A DNA stretch of 63,477 nucleotides, filler included, from Hyphochytrium catenoides (Eukaryota > Protista > Hyphochytriomycota), in assembly GCA_900088475.1 (NCBI GenBank). It is 11 parts of 11 records of this genome, joined end to end, with 100 filler letters (N's around TTAATTAATTAA, not from the genome) between each part and the next. Parts side by side here need not be neighbours in the genome. Positions count along the whole stretch, not along the records: positions 29,061 to 46,079 come from FLMG01004351.1; 10 more parts are not named here. The stretch is one strand, 5' to 3'. The notes under the pieces are model-generated. The model did no database searches and was not told the origin of the DNA. It saw nothing but the letters and a program-made list of their open reading frames with translations. A program made the position numbers and the translations under genes. Below, piece after piece: positions 28,456-44,521 of the stretch. Position 1 is the first letter of the stretch. Each line of letters opens with the position of its first letter.

Positions 28456-29584
28456 AGAGTGTCTGCATCAGAGAGTGAGAGAGAGAGAGAGAGAGAGCTT
28501 GCCAGAGAGAGAGAGAGAGAGAGAGAGATTGTAATAATGGAGAGTCAGACATCCTACTTCAGTCTGGCTCACACGTTTTCGTCATCAGCGCATCTGCTGA
28601 ATCCATCGCAGCATAGTGTCGGCCAATATATTAAAGTATCATCTTGATTCAGCGCTTCAATCATACTGGCACCACCCGCTTCTGTGCATAGCAACAGCTT
28701 TGAGACTCGCTTACGGGGCTCTGAATGAGGAAGTAGTAGTCTTTCATTATTTAGAAAGTCTTCATCAATTCATCCCCTGTTATAGTTTATCTTTAATTAA
28801 TAACACTCCATTCGCGATTGGTAGCGCTTCCCATCCACTTCTTGCAATCACCCCGCTTTCATACATAACGGATCATGAATGTTATGAATGCCAGTGTGAT
28901 TTTTCCATGTATCATTTCCTATGAAATCGCTCCAATCCGATGGTTCATTCCTTCATTGAANNNNNNNNNNNNNNNNNNNNNNNNNNNNNNNNNNNNNNNN
29001 NNNNTTAATTAATTAANNNNNNNNNNNNNNNNNNNNNNNNNNNNNNNNNNNNNNNNNNNNCGCTGTCTCTTTCTCTTTGTGCACGGGAGGAGATTGCAGG
29101 TCAATCTGGATATAGAGTGCCCATGATCAATGCAGTCAAAGGCGAACTGCAGAAGCGACAGAGAGGCAGGATCGCCGCACTGCCGACAGAAGACAATAAG
29201 AGAGAGAAAAAGGAGAGAGGAGAGAGGGAAAAGTCGTAAGCGGCAGGGTGGCAGGCTAACGACAGAACTGGGAANNNNNNNNNNNNNNNNNNNNNNNNNN
29301 NNNNNNNNNNNNNNNNNNCAAAGAGAGAAAGAGGGACGAGATAGAGGAACGAGAGACAGAGAGAGAGTGTAAGAGAGAAAGAGATACGAGAGAAAGAGCC
29401 ATGAGACTTGTGCCATTCTCCAGAAGGACCGAAAGGAAAAGTGTGAGGGACGAGAGAGAGAGAGAGAGAGAGAGAAGGGCAGAGAGAGAGAGAGAGAGAC
29501 AATGTGAAAAAGAGAGAAGCCAGAGTTAAGTGAGAGAGAGAGAAGACAGGAGATAGAAGAGGCACAGACAAGGCGGTCGAGAAG

Positions 29585-29618
<34 letters not shown>

Positions 29619-30020
29619 NNNNNNNNNNNNNNNNNNNNNNNNNNNNNNNNNNNNNNNNNNNNNAGAGAGAACACGGACAGAGCACTAGGGAAGGAAGAAA
29701 GAGAGAGACATCAGACCATCAACGGCCGCAGCCTAAAGGTAAACCGCCTCTGGTTCTCCTTCCCGCTAGAAGACTAGTCAAGGATCATTCTCGTTCCTCA
29801 ACCTTCGCCGCAGAGTAACGGCCCCGCTCTCACACACAACGCTGGAGCTGGTCATACTACTACAGCGAAGGAACACTAAAGGCTGGAGGAGATATGGGTT
29901 GAGGGTCAAGGGACCGTTATTACTAAGCCATCACATTGGAGTTGTGTTTGTGCCTGCTGATTCGAGCTCCTTTTGACCGTTTCTTTCTCCAAACAATGTG
30001 TGAGAGTAAAGAGGTGCCTT

Positions 30021-30096
<76 letters not shown>

Positions 30097-31322
30097 TCTC
30101 TTCTCTTTCTCTCTCTCCGACTCTCTCTCTAACTCTCTCACTCACTCTCTCTCTCTCACTTTTCTCACAACCCCCTGTCTCTCTCCGCTTTCTCTCTCTC
30201 TTTCTCGGTCTGCCTTTTCTCTGCTGTCTCTCTTCTTCATTTCTCTCTTTTGCCTTCCCCTCTCCCTCTTCCTTTCCATCTCTCTCTCGCATGCCATTCT
30301 GTATCGGGCCCTTGCCTTTCAGTCTTCCTTCCCTCTTCTTATTCTGTAACACGCTACATGCCTACTTGTCTTCTCTCCTTCTTCCACTCGGGCCGCTCTG
30401 GTTCGTTCTCACGCCCTCTTAGTCATCGATAGTGTAATCCCGGAAGGGCCGAAGGAGCCTCTCTCTCTCTCTCTGTCTCTCTCTCTCTCTCTCTTTTCCT
30501 TTTCTCTCGTCACTTTTACCCTCTCATCAGGGGCCTTTCTCTCACCTTTGTACATCATTCTTCTTCTTAGGCTCCTCGTCCCTAACTCCCTTCACAACGT
30601 AGAGAAGACATCCTTTATCAGTCATCGAATGGTCTCTTTACAAAGCTTCATCTGATGACTTCTCCTCTTCTTCGCTTCTCACACGCGTCGTAAGAAAGAA
30701 CTTTATAAAGTCTTCATTGCAAACTTCTTTTTGACTCTTTTCTGAAGATCTGGTGATGGTCTCTTCTCTGGCACTTGGTCTTCTTTTTTTCCGCTCTCTG
30801 GATAGCTTCTTTCTCTCTATCTCTAGTCGCATCCTCTTCACTATCTCTAGTAGGGGTTCGGCTGGGCAACTTTCAAACTAGCAGAAGTATCTTGTTGGGA
30901 ATTCGAAAGGAAGAATGTGACTCAACAGAAGATGTGCTCTTTCTCTCTCTCTCTTTTCCTCACTAGCCACGCATGAAGGTAGCATCTAGGAACAGAAAGG
31001 GATTATTCTTCTCCTTCAGTTGTCATAAAGGTAGAAAAGAGAGTTGAGATTCCTCCTCCTGCTGCTTCGATCGTGATAACCTTCGTGGAAGACATCATTG
31101 ATGACTGATAAAGTGACTAAGTAAAATAACGCAGAGCCTCCATCCTACGGAGGGTAACGAAGGAGAAGAGAGACAGAGATATCTTTGCGAGAGACAGAGC
31201 GAGAGAAAAAGAAAGACCGACGCTATGAAGCCACACCACGCTTGCCATGAGAGGTGTATCGGGGTAACAGAGGAAACGATCAAAGGCACGAATAATAGAA
31301 TAAAGTTATTAGGGCAAACATT

Positions 31323-33093: not shown

Positions 33094-33160
<67 letters not shown>

Positions 33161-33201
33161 AAACTCTCAAACTCTCAAACTCTCAAACTCTCAAACTCTC
33201 T

Positions 33202-33237
<36 letters not shown>

Positions 33238-33432
33238 TCTCTCTATCAAACTCTCTTCTCTCTCTCTCTCTCAATCTCTCTCTTCTCTTTCTCTGTCTCT
33301 CTCTTCCCTTTATCAACCTCTCATCGCTCTCTCTGTCTCCTCTCTCTGTCTCCTCTCTCTGTCTCCTCTCTCTGTCTCCTCTCTCTGTCTCCTCTCTCTG
33401 TCTCCTCTCTCTGTCTCTTCTCTCTGTCTCTC

Positions 33433-33467
<35 letters not shown>

Positions 33468-34168
33468 ATGAGCCATCAGCTTGCTGGTTCGGCCGCACAC
33501 AACAAGAACCACCTGTGTCGCAAAAGGGCGAGAGTAATAATACCAACTTTGGCACACTATATAATGTCCAATAGCTATGTGTGGCATAGTAGTACCCTCA
33601 AGACTATCTCCTCAGACCTCCTCCAGGACTGCTCTTGCTGTTCTTTCCTTCCTCCCTTCAAAACTGAGCAATATTCTGATCCTGCTTGTCCTTGCTCTTC
33701 CTTCCCCCTCTTTTTTACACACTCCTCCACCTCTATAACCCCTCTGTCTTTCAAAGATGCCCTCATAACACACCGCTTATTGGCTACCTCGATCTGGCTC
33801 TGTCTTGCCCCATCCCCACATCTCGCCGTCCAAGCAGCTGCTACTCGTAGCAATGGACAGCCCACAGCAGAATCATCAATCCTGTTCATAAAAGCCGTTA
33901 CCGCCTCTGTTGGATTGTAAGAAGTAAAGATATTGGTTGAGTATCGCCGCTCGCGCGATGAAAGGCCAGAAGGCGGCATGAGAGCCAGAGAAAGAGCCAG
34001 ATCTGAAGGGGAAGACTAGCATCTGAAGCTGTGCATCTGCAAGCTTCATATCCTGGAGGGCTGTCCTCTGTCCTACTGCTCATAAGCTGATGATTGTGAG
34101 GGATGCGTGAGCATTGAAAGGAGAGGACAAGAGTGCTCCCTACCACTTGATGTGGTGACTGTGTGAGG

Positions 34169-35548
34169 ATGAGTAGTGTCAGCACCAAGGATGTAGCGGT
34201 GGCTTGTCCTGCTGCTTTCCGTGAACACAAGTACCTTTTGACGGTCCCGGAAGGGCTTGAAGACCTAGCCCTTGCAGAAGTTGAAGAAGTTTGTGAGGAT
34301 CTTGCTGTCCAATGGCAGGGAAGAGGAGTCCTGCTTGTTGACTCTTCATCATCACCTTCCATTCTCTGTAATCGTCTTCGATCGGTACACGCTGTCTCTC
34401 TCTATGTAGTCCATCGTCTCATCGACCCTGCAAGAGCTCCTCTTTCTTCCCTCGAGGATATTGCCAAGACACTGGACTGGCCCTCCATATTCTCTCTATG
34501 GTCTAGTCTCTCCCTCTCTTTCTCCTCTTCTCTCTCTTCTTCGGAACGTGCAGAACCAACAGAACCAACATTCCGTGTGACCTGCTACAGGAGAGGCTCG
34601 CATCTTTTCAACAGCAGCGAGGTAGAGCGGGCCCTAGGTGCAATTGTGGCTTTCCAGACGGGCTTGAAGGGCAAGATGAAAGACTTTGATGCGGATGTGG
34701 TGGTAGATGTGCGGGATGACCAAGTGACAGTGAGGATGCCGCTGCACCCACGAACTCTTTCTCTGAGAAACAGAAGAGAGCTGGGAAGGACCACTCTGAA
34801 CAGGTAACCAAGAGTGACAAACAGTCGTTGTAGAGAAGTGACCCTTGGTGATGAGCTTCTAGTAGACTTGGTTCTCTCTCTCTTTCTCTCTGTGCCTCTG
34901 TTGTTTGTCCCCAGTCTGCAACGTCTTCAAGGTTACGCCTCACATCCCGCGCCATGTCTGCCCCTTGAAACGCTTTCCTTCGACGTTTCTCTTTTCTCTC
35001 TTCCATTCAGCGCTGTAGCTTACTGCGTAGGAAGACTCGCGAACATTCAGCCCGGAATGCTAGTGGTTGATCCTTTGGCTGGCGTGGGATCCATTCCAAT
35101 AGAGGTGTCTCTCTCCTGCGGTGACTCCCTCTTCTTAGCGGGCGACATACACTTGGAGTCATGCCGCAAGGCAACCGCCAATGCCTATCTCCCCTGGACG
35201 ATACCTTGCGAAGGAACTGAGAAGAAAGGACTTTGTGACGTTGTCCAATGGGACGTCAAAAGACTTCCTTTGAAAAAAGACAGCGTTGACATTGTAATCT
35301 CCGATCTTCCATTCGGCTTCCGCCACGGCTCTTTCCGACAAAATCAGAGGCTATATCCTGCGATGATGAAGGAGTTGGGAAGAGTGATAAAGACTGGAGG
35401 CAGAGCTTTTCTTCTTACCACTGAGAGAAAGGTTATGCAAAGAGTACTGGAACAGAAGACAGTGAAGCCACTCTGGAGAGTGGAAGATGAGAGAAAGGCA
35501 GAAGTCGGAGGCTTTCTTGCCTCTCTTTGGATTTTGCTTAGGATCTAG
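34169..35548 (+). CDS. THUMP-domain tRNA guanine methyltransferase (THUMPD3/Trm14-like); exons 34169-34803 and 35011-35548
   Basis: TVPEGLEDLA..EV; TFRVTCYRRGSHLFNSSEVERALG (THUMP); TTLN-SAVAY across the intron; DPLAGVGSIPIE; VDIVISDLPFG. Confidence 0.88.
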
Positions 35549-35667: not shown

Positions 35668-38079
35668 CTAGTCGTCAATGACGACCACCTCTTCTCTCTT
35701 CCTTTTGAGACCAGTCTCTCCTCCATTGCTCTCTTTTGCATCCGCCTTCTTACCCTTTATGGACGCAGATGAGATTGGAGCGGAGGCCGGTGGAGATGAC
35801 TTGGAAGTTGATTGGGTTTCTCGGAGTTTGTCGAGGTCTATCAGCCCAAATAGGCCAAAGTGATCGGATGGCCAAATCCCTTCTGCGATGGGCTGAACTC
35901 CTTGCTGCTCCACAGCTACAATGGCATCTCGCGGGACCTAGAGCGCGGTCATGGTGATTGACGACGTGTGATGAGGCGACGACGAGTACATAGTTCTGCT
36001 GGCTTGCGGCAGAGAACCTAACCTGCAGTTTCCCCGCCACCGGGCCACCGGTACTAAACAGAATCCTGTCGAACCGACTAACATAAGGGCGGTGAATCAT
36101 CTTGTTCCTGGTGCCATCATACGTGGCCGCGCCTTGTCTGCCTGGACCTTGGAGAGAGCGGAGGGAACAAAGCAACAATATAGAGACTGGTGTAGGGACA
36201 CTCGCCGGAGTTGCTCCCTGTCATGATAATGGTGGTCCTTACCATGATGCAGTTGCCACAAGTCAATCCACCCGTCGCCCAGCCCGGCTGTGGCCTGCGC
36301 GGAGAACCTTAGACGGTAGATGGACGAAAGGTGACGACAAGAGTGACCACAAATATTGAACCAGACGACTCTTTTGGGCACGGCTCTCCTCCGTTTGTGC
36401 TCGAAAGATCAAAATGCATCGCCTACCATCTTATAACGATAGACCTCTTCGTCCATGCTTCCCAGATCGCCACCGTTCCTTGTCCTAACGAGATCCAAAA
36501 ACTCCACCTAGGGGAGGAAAATGAAGGGTCAGTCAGAAGAAGGAGATTAATGTCGCCTTTTCGCTAGTTAATCCATTCTGCTCATTCCGCACCTTCTACG
36601 CCTCTATCCAATCTCTCTCTTCACTTCTGCTAATAGCTTTCATGCTAAGGCGCATACCACCATCAGTAAAGCACTTTGAAATTCATCCTAAGGCTAGCTG
36701 CCCAATGCGTATAAAATCTACCTCTACCTGCTTAGCTTCCTTAAGGCCAGAGTAACCAGGGATAGCCCGCGCAGGTATATGATCGAACTCTCCGGCCTTT
36801 ATGAAGCAAGAGGCGTGATAAAACATATCTATTTCCTGTGTCATGCCGTTCGCTGCCAATGGCTTGAAACCGTGGAGAGGTAGATGCGACGACGAGACGT
36901 GAAGCAGCTTAGCACTCCACCATTACGAGGGGTCAGGCGGGACTGGCATCAAACGCCCGCAGTAGTAGAGAAGAATCTCACCCCTTCACCCTTCTTGACG
37001 GCTCGGGTTTCTCCAGCAGGAATCTTTTCTTTGCAAATGCGGCAAGAAGATTTGCCTGCGGAAGTGTCATACCCGTGAGCAGAGTTCCCTTCCAACCGCT
37101 GGGTTGTCGAGAGTCAGAATAAAAGGAACCGCCAGGAAAGTGTGGAGTGCACTCTGAAGGTGAATGGCAAGAGCACGTTGATATGCATGAGGACCTAGGA
37201 AAAGAAGACAGGAGCGAGCAGATAGCACAAATGCATGGAGACCTGACTTTGCTGCCTCTAGCCGCTGGAACTGGCTGCCTGTCTCATTCTCTAGCTCTCC
37301 ATCAAGAACGTTCAAGTCTCCCATAAATACCGCACCCAAAGCACTCTCTTTAGATGCCCTGCAGTGTACATGAGGCGTAGGTACTTGCTCGACCGGGAGC
37401 ATACGTACATCTCTCTTAGAAGCGTGAAGCTCTCGTGAAGCTGGGCTCTTCTTCTGTATCTGCTTTGGGGGAGGCTCTCAAGATGTGAAGTCCCTACCAC
37501 GAAGGTATTGTTTGAGCCTACGTCAATCTTGAGATAAGTCTTAGCCCCATCAAAAGGACGAGTCGAGGAGCTACTGGTTGCCACAAAGAACCTTACCTCC
37601 ATGTAGACCAGCTCTCGGCCCATCTGAGAATTTGGGAAGTGATGGGTCCCAACTTTTATTACCGGGAGGGCACTCATTAGAAGGCTATAGTAGACTTCTG
37701 ACCGTGGTGGGCATTGGGCTATGCTAGTATGGAACAACCCAAACCAGTCCTACCCAGGACAAGGAGTGAACCCATGATTGAAGATGGGCAAGCGGGCAAC
37801 AAGAACTCTGCTACCTGCCTCTGGAGCAGACTTAGAATCGTAGGTGTGACCTCCTGTAGAGCTATGACAGCGGGCTTCAGTGCCTTTATGATCGCTCCGA
37901 TGGCCTACAAAGAAACGTAAAAAGCGTCATGCTTAGGGCGCATTTCTTCGCGCGAGTTCGGTACTATTCCCTAGTGAACTCAGTTCTAAGCTTTCCTTGT
38001 GAACACGCACCTGCATTCGAACTTCGAGGTGTACTTCCTCAAACCACACATTGTAGGTCAAGAGCGAGAGCCTCTTCAT
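35668..38079 (-). CDS. TDP2: TDP2-like EEP-family tyrosyl-DNA phosphodiesterase with an internal PARP-type zinc finger, multi-exon
   Basis: LTYNVWF, IALQEV, NSQMGREL, GTSHLES, FMGDLN, GWIDLW, TYD, SRFDRI, WPSDHFGL in order. The start ATG at 38079 is tentative. Confidence 0.85.
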
Positions 38080-39152: not shown

Positions 39153-42130
39153 TCAAAGACTTTTCACTCTTTCATGCACAGCAGACTGAGAATCTAGGTT
39201 GCCTTGAAACTTGTCTTGCCACTTGAGGAAAGAATGGTGCTTCTCCCGATCGAAAATCTCTTCCTCTTCCAGACATCTACAGTCCTTCAGTACTGGTGTT
39301 AGCAGCTGCTTCTGAAGCTCCAGCTGTAATGCCTCCATTTCTTTCTCAAAGACACTTTTGCTGTCGTCGCTTCGGTCTTTCAGCACAGAGACTTTGGTCT
39401 GCCGCCTGCATGTAGCAGCGTCACTATATGTTGGCATCAATATAAACTTCTCTTGGACTCTCTTCATGTCCTCTGTCTGGTTATCCTCTCGTCGCACTCG
39501 TCCGAGCATTTCTATCTCCTCTTTGAGGACGTCAGTGAGAAACTCATAATCGACGTCCATGTCTATGCCGCACTCTTTCATTAGCTCCTCCCAATAGGCT
39601 TTGTACTCCGCATTGCGGAACTGCTCCTGAAAGCGACGCCTTCGTTGTTCTTTTGAATTGTGCAGGTCAATGCCCCAGAATTTGTCCACGCGGCACTGAA
39701 GAGCTTTGGAAGATGTGGTTGGAAAAGGGACAGAGCAAAAAGAATGTGGACATGCAGACTTAGGAGAGGTAGTATGGAGAGTGGAAGGAGAAAGGAATGC
39801 CGATCAACGCAATCTGATGGTGCATAGATAAAGTAACCAGTAAGAGAAGATGAGAGAGAGAGACAGGAGAGAGAAAGGAGAGGGGAGGATAGAGGGAAAG
39901 GAGAGGACGGAGAGAGTAAGAGAAAGCGAGGATCTAATATGCGTGAAGGTATTCAAAAGACGACAGTCCTGGACCGGAGGTTTTAAGTCTTTTACCTTCT
40001 TCACATCTCATCACGAGCCTTTCCCTGATTTGCTGGGTCACTTCCAGGAGTAGATTTTGCAGCTCGATACGCCGCTTCTCCAGGTCGACGCAGCGTTGTT
40101 CGTACGCTGTTGTCTCTCTTCCAACAAGCCGCAGGAAGGCTTCCTTATTCTTTTCCATATGCCGCTCCACTCCTCCATAGAACATCGCATCACTTTTCCT
40201 CTTTTCCTCCTCTCTCGTCCATACTAGCTCCTCTCTCTCATCTCGTGCGATTTGAAGCGCCCTATCAGCTTGGCTACGCAAGATGTAGGCCTCATACTCT
40301 CTCTCTTCCTCCTGGACTTTTCTCTTCAAATCGCGTCTCCTCATTATCTCCACTTCATCTTCCATAGCCTCTGCCTGATGACGCCTCATCTCTTCGAAGA
40401 GATTCTCCTTTGCCATCTGTAGCCTTCTGGCAGCGTCTTCCTGCTTTTTCACCAACACCTCAGCTCTTCGCTGTTCCTGTGCCTTCTGTCTCTCACGGAG
40501 TAGGGCTCTCAAACTCCTCATCTCCCCCCGTGTTGATTGGTCCTCATTTACGGCTCTACGTACGCATTGGCGAACAAGGGAAACAAATAATAAGTATCAG
40601 AAAGAGAGGAAAAGAAAAATGATCAGGGAGTAACAGGAGCGACCAGCCAAGCAAAGAGGGTATATAAGAAGGAAGTTAAGGAAGGACCAATGAGAATACA
40701 TATCGACGGATAGATAGATGAACAGCGAGAGTCAGCCAATTGTGACAACAAGGGCAACGAGGTATTGGAGAGTGGAAGTCATAGCAAGTCATATCCAGTC
40801 ATATAACGTTCATGAGCACTTCAGAAATCGCAGCTCGCAAGAGGCGTCACGCCTGGCGGCCCGCCTTACCGTGGACCGATGATAGACAGAGGAAACGAGT
40901 CGAGAAAGAGCTTGGTACTCCGCAAAGCTTCTTCATCCTCCGCGTCACCACGCAGGGGAACGAGAGGGGCCGCCTTGAGAACTTTGTGGGATGGACTGAG
41001 TGTCTTACAAGCGGCCTTAGCATGTAGTTTGTCTGGCGATCGACTGGGCATCGTGGAGAACGTTGAGAACCAGAGCGCTTTTGCTGCGCCGAGCTCCACC
41101 TCAAATCTTTCTAGCGTACATTTCTTCTCCGGAGACTGACCAGGCACCTCAGCAGATTTCTCTAGGAGAGATCCACATTGAGAACCGAGCTGACTTATAA
41201 TAGCGGCCTGCGACAATCCTAAGGATGCGTTCGTCTGTCTTCTGCTGCTATCAGGGGGTGGAAGAAGGTTGACCGAGCTCTCTTTATCCTTAAGGTTCTT
41301 TAGTATCATACTTTCATCTGCCTTATAATGTTGTACAAAGGCAAAGGAATCCTTTCTGCACGTAGGACAGAGGTTGCCAATGTCTATAGTCACCGCTGGC
41401 GCATAGCCTCGCAGATAGACAAGTTCTATATGTAAGGAGCTTGAGACCCTCTTGACAGGGGAAGAAGTGCTGCTTCCTTTAGCTCCCTCTTCTCTCTTTT
41501 TTCCTCCGCCTGACGGTAGCCCTGAGGCCACACCTGGCAGTTTGGCCTTGATCGAGGGAGAAAGAAGGGGCGTCGATTTGGTGGGCGAGGGGGAGAGAAC
41601 ATGGCTGTGTGCCCCTTCCAGGGGCGAAAGATGGTCTTCTCTGGTAAGAATTATATGATAGCCAAGCGCTTGAGAAGACCTATCGGTAGTACCAAAGAAA
41701 CTCTTTCGCTTCCCACCGGAGGTAGCTAGGATCTTCGCCTGCTGCTGTCGGAGGCTTTTTGTCCTCCTGTCCTCGGCCACAAAAGTGCAAACCTGACAGC
41801 CCCCAATCTCTTCCGCCGCACCAGCCTTGACCTCCCTCTGTAGCAGCAGAACCGAAGGTAACCGACCTCGTCCAGGAGCGAAAGAAGCAGGATCTCCCAG
41901 TCGTTTTAGGGCTTCCCGTCGTGGAGAATCGAGGTCATTTGAGCTCTCCGTAGTTAGGGAACTGTCAGTTGAGATTTTACTGGTTGACGTGCTCTGCCTG
42001 CTAAGGGTCGGCAGCGCTGCATTATGGCGCCCAATGAGTTCCTCCAAGCCAATCATGCTATCTATTAGACCATGAAACCTCCCTTTCCTCTCCCCCTCCA
42101 CATTGGCAAGACCTGAAGCCTAGGCTGGCG
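39153..42130 (-). CDS. Uncharacterised multi-exon protein with Ser-rich and coiled-coil regions
   Basis: Three long same-strand ORFs (40866-42101, 39934-40521, 39153-39689) with plausible splice sites and E/R/K/Q-rich heptads; no family recognised; 5' end not resolved. Confidence 0.55.
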
Positions 42131-43258
42131 CTGACTGCACGCATGCAAGCTTCGCAGGGACAGACGCCACCATGGACCAAGAAGGGACTATCATAGCCAC
42201 TATAACTTGCCTATAGTAGTGTCCTCATCAGAAGTCAGTCATCACATTGAATCCCTCAAGAGTATGCACATCAAAAGGTCAGACTGGCTTCGCAGCTGTC
42301 CAAAGCCCTGAGCACCGCTGTCCTGGAAGAATGACCAAAGCGGCAATAAACCGTGGGAATGCTTACTATGAACTCCACACAGTACATTGTTTTTGACCCT
42401 CTGAGCACCCCCAGGACATGGGGTCCATCATCCAAAAGGCGTTACAAACTTGCCACTTGTACCCAGCCCTAGCGTGGCAGTAGTAATATCTTAAATCGTC
42501 TTTCGGCCATTGGTTGGGATACTACTACTACTTGGAACCAGGTGCATACTTGTACAATGTTTGGACAAATAAGCTTTCTGTGAGGCTACGAAGGGACATC
42601 TGGGATGCGGGGATACAACAAGTGCGCACAGCATTTTTCTCCTCTAATTTTCGTGTGTATACGGGGAGCAGTGTTGGTGTTGTGTGGCAACCTGTCTCTG
42701 AGGGCCTCGATACAGATATAATTCTCTCTGGTCCAAGAGAAAGGTATGTGCGATTATGTTTGTTGATTGTGGGCACATTTTTAGTGCGCTTTGAAACTTT
42801 GTAAGCAGGGCTCATCTACCAGGTTGTGCCATCTCATGACTCATGACAGAGAGAGCAGGGAAGGGCAGGAGAAGGACGAGCGCAGTTGTCCAGACCACGA
42901 AGATTGCAGGTGATCACAATGATTGTGGTGCCGGCTGTTTTTATCTCTTTCGGTGGCTTCGCGTGATCCTCTGTCTTCCGTAGCCTCCCTGGTGCATGCT
43001 CTTGTCTGAAGAGGGACAGTTCTCCCTTTGTATAGCTTATGGCGGCCGCCTCCTGCTGCTGCTGCCAGACTCCTCGTTGCTTGCGCCGGTCTTTTGCATT
43101 TTCTTGCCTCTTCAGCACCAAAGGATTGCCGGCGTCCCCCTCGTGGTCCGCCACCAGTGCCTCAGTTTCTATCCACCTATCGGCAGGAGCAGAAGTCTAA
43201 ACGATTTCTCTATTGTCCGAAGAGGCAACTTGGTAGAGTTGTAAGCAGCGAGAGGAAA

Positions 43259-44521
43259 ATGGGTCACGAGGAAGGGCTGGTTGTGGACCAGGGCCTTCTG
43301 ATCCCGACATACTTTTACCCAGGAGAGTATTGGCTTCAACTTCATGATTCCTACGTTCCATCTACTTTCGCGATTATTAACCCCAATAGTGGTGTGGGTG
43401 AGAAGCTCAACCAGAACTATGTGGATCAAGTGAAAGCTTCCAAGGCAAAGGGAATCAAAGTACTTGGTTACGTCCACACCCGATATGGAGCAAGAGAGCT
43501 TGAAGAGGTCCTTCAGGAGATAAGAACCTTCAGGGAGTGGTATCACGTTGACGGGCTATTTATAGACGAGGTAAGCTGTTTTCTTACATGTGACATTATC
43601 CTCTTTATGTTTCGTTAGAAGTCCAGCTGCAGATCGGACAATTACTATTGCCCTGCCTGTGCTTAGATATCTCTGACCTTCATCGCATAGCGTTTAGCGA
43701 ACCTTCGTCTCCATTCGCCTAGAACGAAGCACGGTTGATTTAGTTCTGCCCTCTGGTGCCACGAGCACTGCGGTTAATGCATTGATGTTCACTGTGGAAC
43801 TTGTAGGCAAGCAGCGACGGTGGCAAGTTCGAGTACTATCTAGCTCTTTATAACTCAGTCAAGCAGGAGGCAGGGAACACCGCGACGGTGGTTCTCAATC
43901 CTGGGAGACACTGCCATGAGTGCTACATGCAGGCCTCAGATATCGTTGTGGTCTTCGAAGACTACTATAAAGAATATATAGAGAACTTTACGGCACCTTC
44001 GTGGACGAAGAAGTACCCTTCGTCAAGGTTCTGCCATCTGGTCCACTCATGCAAATCGGAAAAAGCAATGGTCCGCGCAGTAGATCTAAGTAAGACCCGG
44101 CGCTGTGGTTGGGTCTTCGTCACCTGCGGTGAGTTAGTCTTACAAGTCTCTGTCCTGGGAGGTTGGGCTCCTTTGTCACCGTTCAAAAATCTTACGGCCG
44201 TCAATCCTTTTTTTGTCCGTTTCGTCCGTCTTAGTGGCAGGCTCAAGCTGGTCCACTAAACCCTTTGCTTATCCTCTCTGTTTTTTCTTAGTTAACCCAG
44301 CACTCTCGTCCCGTTACTTTTTGACTGCTTGTTTGTTTCTCCGGGGTCTTTCCCTTCTTGTGTATAACGTTGTTTGAGGCTTTAACTCTTATTACCTGCT
44401 GTCCCTTGTAGGAGAAATGCCAAATCCGTGGGACAAGCTTCCGACGCCTAACTACTGGGCATTAGAGTGCAAGAAGGTGAAGGAGAATGTGTCAGTGGGA
44501 TGCAATTGCGTCGTCCAGTGA
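43259..44521 (+). CDS. Spherulin-4 / GH135 protein with C-terminal CaaX; exons 43259-43570, 43807-44128, 44412-44521; 247 aa
   Basis: LLIPTYFYP, IINPNSG, VLGYVHTRYG, VDGLFIDE, VLNPG, DIVVVFE, FCHLVH, GWVFVT, NPWDKLP; both GT-AG introns keep frame; ends VGCNCVVQ*. Confidence 0.9.

Follow-up and report, generated by a model that had tools for sequence, protein, structure and literature searches.

A predicted TDP2-family phosphodiesterase of Hyphochytrium catenoides with a PARP-type zinc finger nested in its catalytic domain

The stretch of Hyphochytrium catenoides DNA analysed here (the window; 63,477 nucleotides, 11 joined parts of assembly GCA_900088475.1) carries, in the part from record FLMG01004351.1, an intact, intron-rich eukaryotic gene of 11 exons on the minus strand (38079-35668). 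Its predicted product, of about 418 amino acids, is a TDP2-family, Mg-dependent phosphodiesterase of the endonuclease/exonuclease/phosphatase (EEP) fold, with one zinc finger of the PARP1/ligase III type nested inside the catalytic domain. By sequence, the gene belongs to a family conserved in oomycetes and a few protists. There is continuing debate over the way animal TDP2 locates trapped topoisomerase II, for which ubiquitin, SUMO, and ZATT have each been implicated. A naturally occurring TDP2 whose DNA cleft has its own break sensor, if that is what this enzyme proves to be, would provide a simple model of direct lesion recognition. The reading as a whole envisages a TDP2-type remover of 5'-phosphotyrosyl (topoisomerase II) adducts, in which the nested finger holds the break and the carboxyl-terminal tail is a putative nuclear localisation and SUMO-binding element. 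We give it a probability of about 0.6.

Enzyme identity and insertion point

Relatives were sought with a query of 114 amino acids (37408-37749, minus strand), in which exon 3, intron 3, and exon 4 form one stop-free frame. The search covered 1.84 billion representative proteins at a cut-off of E 1e-3 and returned 10 proteins; one, P0007, was set aside as a leucine-rich-repeat protein matched by chance. Eight of the remaining nine contain the Pfam domain zf-PARP, and Exo_endo_phos was also scored in six of these eight, the other two being truncated at the amino terminus. Every full-length relative has zf-PARP inside Exo_endo_phos; in P0008, for example, Exo_endo_phos (6-365) encloses zf-PARP (198-271). 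A further search with P0005 (Lagenidium giganteum N0F65_008358) retrieved 52 proteins, about 40 of which have both PF00645 and PF03372. One relative, P0009, is a single uninterrupted open reading frame (ORF) of 349 amino acids on its contig: EEP part, finger, EEP part. Because this one ORF runs straight through the finger, the nesting is real coding sequence and not an artefact of exon modelling.

Which EEP enzyme this is was addressed with a profile of 29 full-length relatives (alignment A1), searched against all PDB sequences. TDP2 ranked first (5j3p, E 1.5e-25), with human, mouse, zebrafish, and C. elegans entries matched too, and no EEP enzyme besides TDP2 was found at E<=0.01. The match comes in two stretches: profile positions 6-172 align with TDP2 chain residues 8-160, and positions 278-369 with residues 162-251. 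The insertion therefore falls between the abutting chain residues 160 and 162, right after GDTNLRDRE. The middle part of the profile (186-267) matches PARP1 Zn1, PARP1 Zn2, and the ligase III finger, at E of about 1e-10. (The Hyphochytrium exons 3-4 piece, searched alone, found no match in PDB.)

The predicted fold points the same way. Structure prediction (AlphaFold2) was run on the relative P0005 with alignment A1, as a stand-in for the Hyphochytrium protein, and gave a model with mean pLDDT 81.2 and pTM 0.81; the finger (about 195-262) has pLDDT 84-95, and residues 264-275 form a disordered linker. Searched against PDB with Foldseek, the model retrieved TDP2 at every one of ranks 1-45 (E 1e-16 to 4e-14), with TM scores of 0.77-0.86 for catalytic-domain chains and 0.61-0.62 for full-length C. 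elegans TDP2. After these come neutral sphingomyelinase and CNOT6L, at 7e-10 and weaker. A previous reading of this DNA, made from the sequence alone (the sequence-only reading), had proposed a TDP2-like enzyme with a finger inside its catalytic domain, and the profile, the fold, and the collinear exons all bear this out.

Equivalents of the human catalytic residues N120, E152, D262/N264, and D350/H351 are present in the Hyphochytrium protein, within the motifs TYNVW, LQEV, GDLN, and PSDH (exons 1, 2, 5, and 11, respectively), which the family profile places in register with the TDP2 motifs. Among residues of the cleft, TSHLES (which in the family aligns with TDP2 when the profile is compared with PDB) and the Phe of RFDR are kept. 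The animal enzymes of human, mouse, zebrafish, and C. elegans (PDB 5ino, 4gz1, 4f1h, and 4gew) thus share with this protein the EEP fold, the catalytic motifs, and TSHLES, and are its best match by both profile and fold. Unlike them, it has changed residues at the R276 and W307 positions of the cleft, a module of about 100 residues containing the finger between motifs M6 and M7, an added carboxyl-terminal tail, and no amino-terminal UBA-like domain: the Hyphochytrium protein and its relatives start only a few residues before the first EEP motif. The UBA-like domain is a mark of the animal layout and does not define the catalytic family.

In TDP2, the DNA cleft is formed by motifs M5 ('cap'), M6 ('floor'; mouse D272, N274, and R276), and M7 ('grasp'; W307, L315, and F325), with H236/S239/R241, R276, W307, and F325 as the mouse cleft residues of M5-M7 (PMC5778467). 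Since these three motifs make up the cleft, a finger inserted between floor and grasp would sit on the DNA-binding face of the enzyme.

Exons and the finger junction

The gene model was read from the sequence between 38400 and 35400 and from the list of short ORFs. It starts with an ATG at 38079 and closes with a TAG stop ending at 35668; across the 11 joined exons 418 codons stay open with no internal stop, and all 10 introns are GT..AG and 50-220 nucleotides long. A profile of 34 relatives, run on stop-to-stop pieces of the region, matches 10 of the 11 exons in strict order (i-Evalues 8e-16 to 0.011), and its matches off the model all have negative scores. Relatives searched onto the window with tblastn retrieve exons 1-5 and 9-11. 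The exon translations give the motifs in the order LLTYNVWF, LQEV, GTSHLES, GDLN, AAKS-G-KSSCRIC, MFYHASCF, IPGYSGL, GWIDLW, TYDG, RFDR, and PSDHFGL; every peptide, EEP motif, and outer coordinate quoted in the sequence-only reading is found there.

The amino-terminal catalytic half occupies exons 1 to 5 (all exons are on the minus strand, and profile positions are those of the family profile). Exon 1 (38011-38079; profile 3-22, i-Evalue 5.6e-05) holds the start codon and LLTYNVWF, the first EEP motif, whose catalytic Asn is by motif match the equivalent of human TDP2 N120; the family proteins begin at this same point. Exon 2 (37815-37904; 23-52, 4.7e-08) encodes LQEV, with the catalytic Glu equivalent to E152, and has a weak Pfam Exo_endo_phos match of its own. 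Exon 3 (37597-37749; 54-106, 8.4e-16) supplies EEP core strands and the motif GMGRELV, and exon 4 (37409-37527; 102-143, 1.3e-11) the GTSHLES motif of the M5 cap, ending at 37409 in phase 2 with the donor GTACGT at 37408. Exon 5 (37243-37358; 149-172, 6.5e-06) contains GDLN, the M6 floor with its catalytic Asp and Asn, then a short linker and the AAKS that starts the finger.

The finger itself is divided. Exon 6 (36982-37055; profile 190-213) encodes its first half, with the C-x2-C ligands in G-KSSCRIC and a conserved Arg in ETRAV, and exon 7 (36728-36835; 218-241) its second half, with the H-x2-C ligands in MFYHASCF followed by IPGYSGL. Exon 8 (36427-36507) brings the end of the finger and a variable linker back to the EEP fold. 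It is the weakest exon: its splice sites are good and its frame is open, and it has no match to the family profile, corresponding to the variable, low-confidence linker of the relatives. The TDP2 fold resumes in exon 9 (36243-36294; 276-295) with ATAGLGDGWIDLW, which aligns from TDP2 chain residue 162. Exon 10 (36023-36147; 294-330, 1.9e-06) carries TYDG and RFDR, in the M7 grasp region, and exon 11 (35668-35937; 340-383, 1.9e-09) carries WPSDHFGL (the catalytic Asp-His, with the H351 equivalent), a low-complexity tail, a KRKR basic patch, the carboxyl-terminal VVVIDD, and the stop.

Pfam searches of the Hyphochytrium gene were made exon by exon. Exon 6 matches zf-PARP (PF00645) at positions 7-27 (E 0.01, 17.0 bits) and exon 7 at positions 40-80 (E 0.18, 13.0 bits); a longer form of exon 7, from an acceptor at 36852, matches positions 37-80 (E 0.072, 14.3 bits). 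The two exon matches lie side by side, in collinear order, and complement each other; the four zinc ligands are all there, in the arrangement C-x2-C...H-x2-C with an AKSG-type start (AAKS-G-KSSCRIC ... MFYHASC). The relatives score 38.4-61.8 bits. The family shows no variation at the zinc ligands or at the Arg that corresponds to PARP1 R34, and this Arg is retained in the Hyphochytrium protein; the position of PARP1 R18 is Arg in the family and Lys in Hyphochytrium. The identification of the finger as zf-PARP, put forward in the sequence-only reading, is thus supported by the collinear Pfam matches, the four ligands, and the matches of the family profile to PARP1 and ligase III, although neither exon by itself attains the Pfam gathering score.

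That reading had also joined exons 37055-36982 and 36835-36728 in frame. The frame is indeed open, but the junction is not unique: 36982/36835, 36990/36852, and 36955/36835 all keep both the frame and the four zinc ligands. They place 23, 26, and 32 residues, respectively, between the ligand pairs, where the relatives mostly have 31 and PARP1 Zn1 has 28. For the pieces of exon 6 and exon 7, the family profile gives 8.4 + 5.2 bits for the first, 7.8 + 9.2 bits for the second, and 8.1 + 5.2 bits for the third. The acceptor at 36852 adds ANGMTQ to exon 7, which matches the family pattern NG.T.EI, and the alignment of exon 7 with the family profile extends upstream of 36835, to 36856. Homology therefore mildly favours 36990/36852.

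Might the finger exons be mis-modelled, whether skipped, belonging to another transcript, or part of a pseudogene? The ambiguity of the exon 6/7 junction would allow for it, as would the fact that exon 7 or exon 8 can each be skipped with the frame kept, in a model drawn from genomic sequence. Exon 5, however, ends in phase 1 and exon 9 begins in phase 0, so that loss of exon 6, of exons 6 and 7, or of exons 6-8 shifts the frame and introduces 6-10 stops into the carboxyl-terminal catalytic half; exon 6 at least is required for the enzyme to be produced. Moreover, no exon contains stops, the splice sites are canonical, and the finger occupies the same position as in the relatives, including the intron-free one. 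Mis-modelling is accordingly very improbable. (We also rejected a reading as two distinct genes and one in which an intron harbours a gene: both EEP halves are required, and the relatives encode the whole layout in one ORF.)

A proposed mode of action and its rivals

The layout suggests how the two modules might cooperate. Short helices attach the complete finger to the cleft at one end, and a flexible linker does so at the other. The cleft would take a single-stranded 5' end bearing a phosphotyrosyl adduct, as in the solved TDP2-DNA complexes, while the finger would hold the duplex end or nick beside the adduct through its conserved backbone-grip residues, gripping the phosphate backbone of the 3'-ending strand in the fashion of the PARP1 fingers. 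Lesion targeting would then proceed without the amino-terminal ubiquitin-binding UBA of the animal type.

The tail may contribute as well. The Hyphochytrium protein ends in KRKREEVVVIDD. Family members share a basic patch and, after it, a hydrophobic-acidic motif at the very end: VVVIDD in Hyphochytrium (35671-35706, minus strand), ...PI.ID/E in oomycetes, EVIEID in P0009, and EVIIIDSDDD in P0053. These features may represent a nuclear localisation signal and a motif of the SUMO-interaction type, which may provide nuclear import and binding of SUMO-modified topoisomerase II. What makes the SUMO reading appealing is that SUMO2 helps TDP2 act on topoisomerase II complexes, though animal TDP2 has no canonical SUMO-interaction motif (PMC5778467); PDB entry 5tvq, cited beside this link between SUMO2 and TDP2, is among the Foldseek matches.

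Topoisomerase II (TOP2) breaks have 4-base 5' overhangs (PMC5778467). One can imagine, tentatively and with more doubt than conviction, a finger seated on the recessed 3' duplex end, a cleft engaging the 4-nucleotide 5' overhang, and a SUMO-binding tail, together making a self-contained repair of TOP2 adducts that would depend on neither a ubiquitin-binding domain nor PARP1 signalling. This would be a separate evolutionary solution of oomycetes and related protists.

Several points weigh against the proposed topoisomerase II enzyme. With solved TDP2 the protein shares only about 20% identity, which leaves room for a change of substrate. In the Hyphochytrium protein, Leu takes the place of the floor Arg (mouse R276), and Tyr that of the grasp Trp (mouse W307), where the family has Phe. 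Each finger exon alone lies under the Pfam gathering score (17 and 13-14 bits versus 39.3). In two of the three junction models (23 or 26 residues; 32 in the third), fewer residues separate the ligand pairs than in the relatives, and with a shorter loop, capping of the DNA end by the finger could differ. The SUMO-binding tail is a reading from motif resemblance, and the gene model is one from genomic sequence.

A second possibility is the same architecture acting on another substrate, as a nick- or gap-directed end-cleaner of 5' or 3' blocks or of TOP1/TOP3-type adducts, with a finger that senses nicks, like those of ligase III or plant ZDP. The ligase III and PARP1 fingers are mainly sensors of single-strand breaks, and the family profile matches all of them about equally, which would suit such a role, as would the low identity to TDP2 and the changed equivalents of R276 and W307. 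Yet TDP2 is the sole sequence match among solved EEP enzymes, the fold E-values of the next EEP families trail its own by six to seven orders of magnitude, and the TDP2-typical TSHLES, RFDR, and PSDH are retained. A changed substrate seems rather unlikely to us.

Alternatively, the finger might be no break sensor at all, functioning as a regulatory plug over the active site or as a module that binds protein, RNA, or poly(ADP-ribose). It adjoins the catalytic cleft and could occlude it, and its inter-ligand loop, which in PARP1 holds base-stacking residues, is shortened in the Hyphochytrium protein under two of the three junctions. Against this, the basic backbone-grip residues and all of the ligands are conserved across the family, and we know of no zf-PARP with a non-DNA ligand. 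We regard such a function as improbable and keep to the nested finger as a candidate break sensor.

Comparison with known fingers makes the arrangement plainer. Like PARP1 Zn1 and Zn2 and the DNA ligase III finger, this one has C-x2-C...H-x2-C, an AKSG start, basic backbone-grip residues, and an I.G...L tail; unlike them, it is single-copy and nested inside another domain instead of being amino-terminal. Plant TDP2 (RanBP2-type zinc fingers plus EEP) and plant ZDP (three zf-PARP plus a 3'-phosphatase) are likewise end-cleaning enzymes fused to fingers. In both of them, however, the fingers are amino-terminal and are not known to be nested; furthermore, the plant TDP2 finger is of another type than zf-PARP, and the catalytic fold of ZDP is different. 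A shape search of the ESM Atlas retrieved chordate TDP2 clusters with UBA domains and, as a structural neighbour, a plant TDP2-like cluster with RanBP2-type fingers; zf-PARP occurred in no large cluster of that search. (A feature search of the ESM Atlas with P0009 was uninformative, all scores being below 0.9.)

Relatives, annotation, and genomic neighbours

Members of the family come from Phytophthora, Pythium, Globisporangium, Peronospora, Plasmopara, Bremia, Albugo, Peronosclerospora, Nothophytophthora, and Lagenidium, across the oomycete orders; four divergent members (P0003, P0004, P0009, and P0053) are from metagenomes and are eukaryotic. The Hyphochytrium protein resembles the oomycete 'PARP-type domain-containing proteins' in domain order, insertion point, and carboxyl-terminal motif, with local identity of about 40-54%. 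It keeps the full carboxyl-terminal part of zf-PARP, whereas many Phytophthora members are shortened (Pfam positions 1-56 of 87). Its gene has 10 introns, as against the near-uninterrupted ORF of the metagenomic P0009.

Automatic names in NCBI and UniProt run from 'hypothetical protein' through 'PARP-type domain-containing protein' to, once, 'putative Zinc finger, PARP-type, endonuclease/exonuclease/phosphatase' (Plasmopara halstedii). The sequence-only reading did not recognise the architecture. In support of this, none of the approximately 40 oomycete entries with both domains bears the name TDP2, and a full-text literature search found no paper on a TDP2 with a PARP-type finger. Those same entries, on the other hand, already carry PF00645 together with PF03372, so that the layout is in part annotated and the novelty is weakened: the domain pair is already machine-annotated in databases. 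New here are the recognition as TDP2, the insertion point between M6 and M7, the common tail, and the intron-rich Hyphochytrium member. The family occurs in essentially all sampled oomycete pathogens of plants and animals, and a TDP2-like label would correct dozens of 'hypothetical protein' annotations. It is also a clear case of one domain nested within an EEP enzyme between two motifs that contact DNA.

Two entries among the relatives look like faulty gene models. P0044 (Phytophthora cinnamomi, 702 amino acids) is labelled an ABC 'pleiotropic drug resistance protein' yet has an EEP part, and is probably a merged model; P0010 (200 amino acids) is without both the GDxN motif and the finger, and is probably a model that skipped them. 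Metagenomes scanned with the Hyphochytrium piece yielded no relative; scanned with the family alignment, they yielded just two EEP genes, finger-less, high in GC, and bacterial in appearance. These are at L006 1459-2349 (plus strand) and L005 2756-3331, representing a TDP2-like EEP protein of 296 amino acids with FNTWF, TAHLES, GDFN, and PSDHF and no finger. At the loci of P0009 and P0053, an LRR_9 gene lies just downstream on the opposite strand (L001 4053-4736, minus; L004 4371-5000, minus). This common neighbour suggests that the two source organisms are related; the same gene order is absent from the Hyphochytrium window.

Genes neighbouring the TDP2-like gene have almost no close relatives in the collections searched. 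Tail-to-tail with it, with about 120 nucleotides between the stop codons, lie a THUMP domain ORF and then a UPF0020/RMKL-like methyltransferase ORF (34163-35548, plus strand), which probably make up a single tRNA/rRNA methyltransferase gene split by a small intron. The only database match of the methyltransferase ORF is a metagenomic protein (39% identity), whose contig has no gene order in common with the window. On the other side, a 411-residue uninterrupted ORF rich in Ser, Pro, and Lys (40866-42101, minus strand) has no Pfam family and no relative among 5.8 billion proteins, and is either a lineage-specific gene or no gene. Farther along are two ORFs (43028-44259, plus strand), one matching the first half of Pfam Spherulin4 (spherulation-specific family 4) and the other its second half; they probably form a single gene interrupted by an intron.

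At 29061-30420 and 33100-33500 there are long (CT)n/(GA)n microsatellites, which ORFs translate as SLSLSL or ERERER, and the piece also contains short stretches of N; together these look like the marks of a scaffolded draft assembly. GC content is about 0.46-0.52 throughout.

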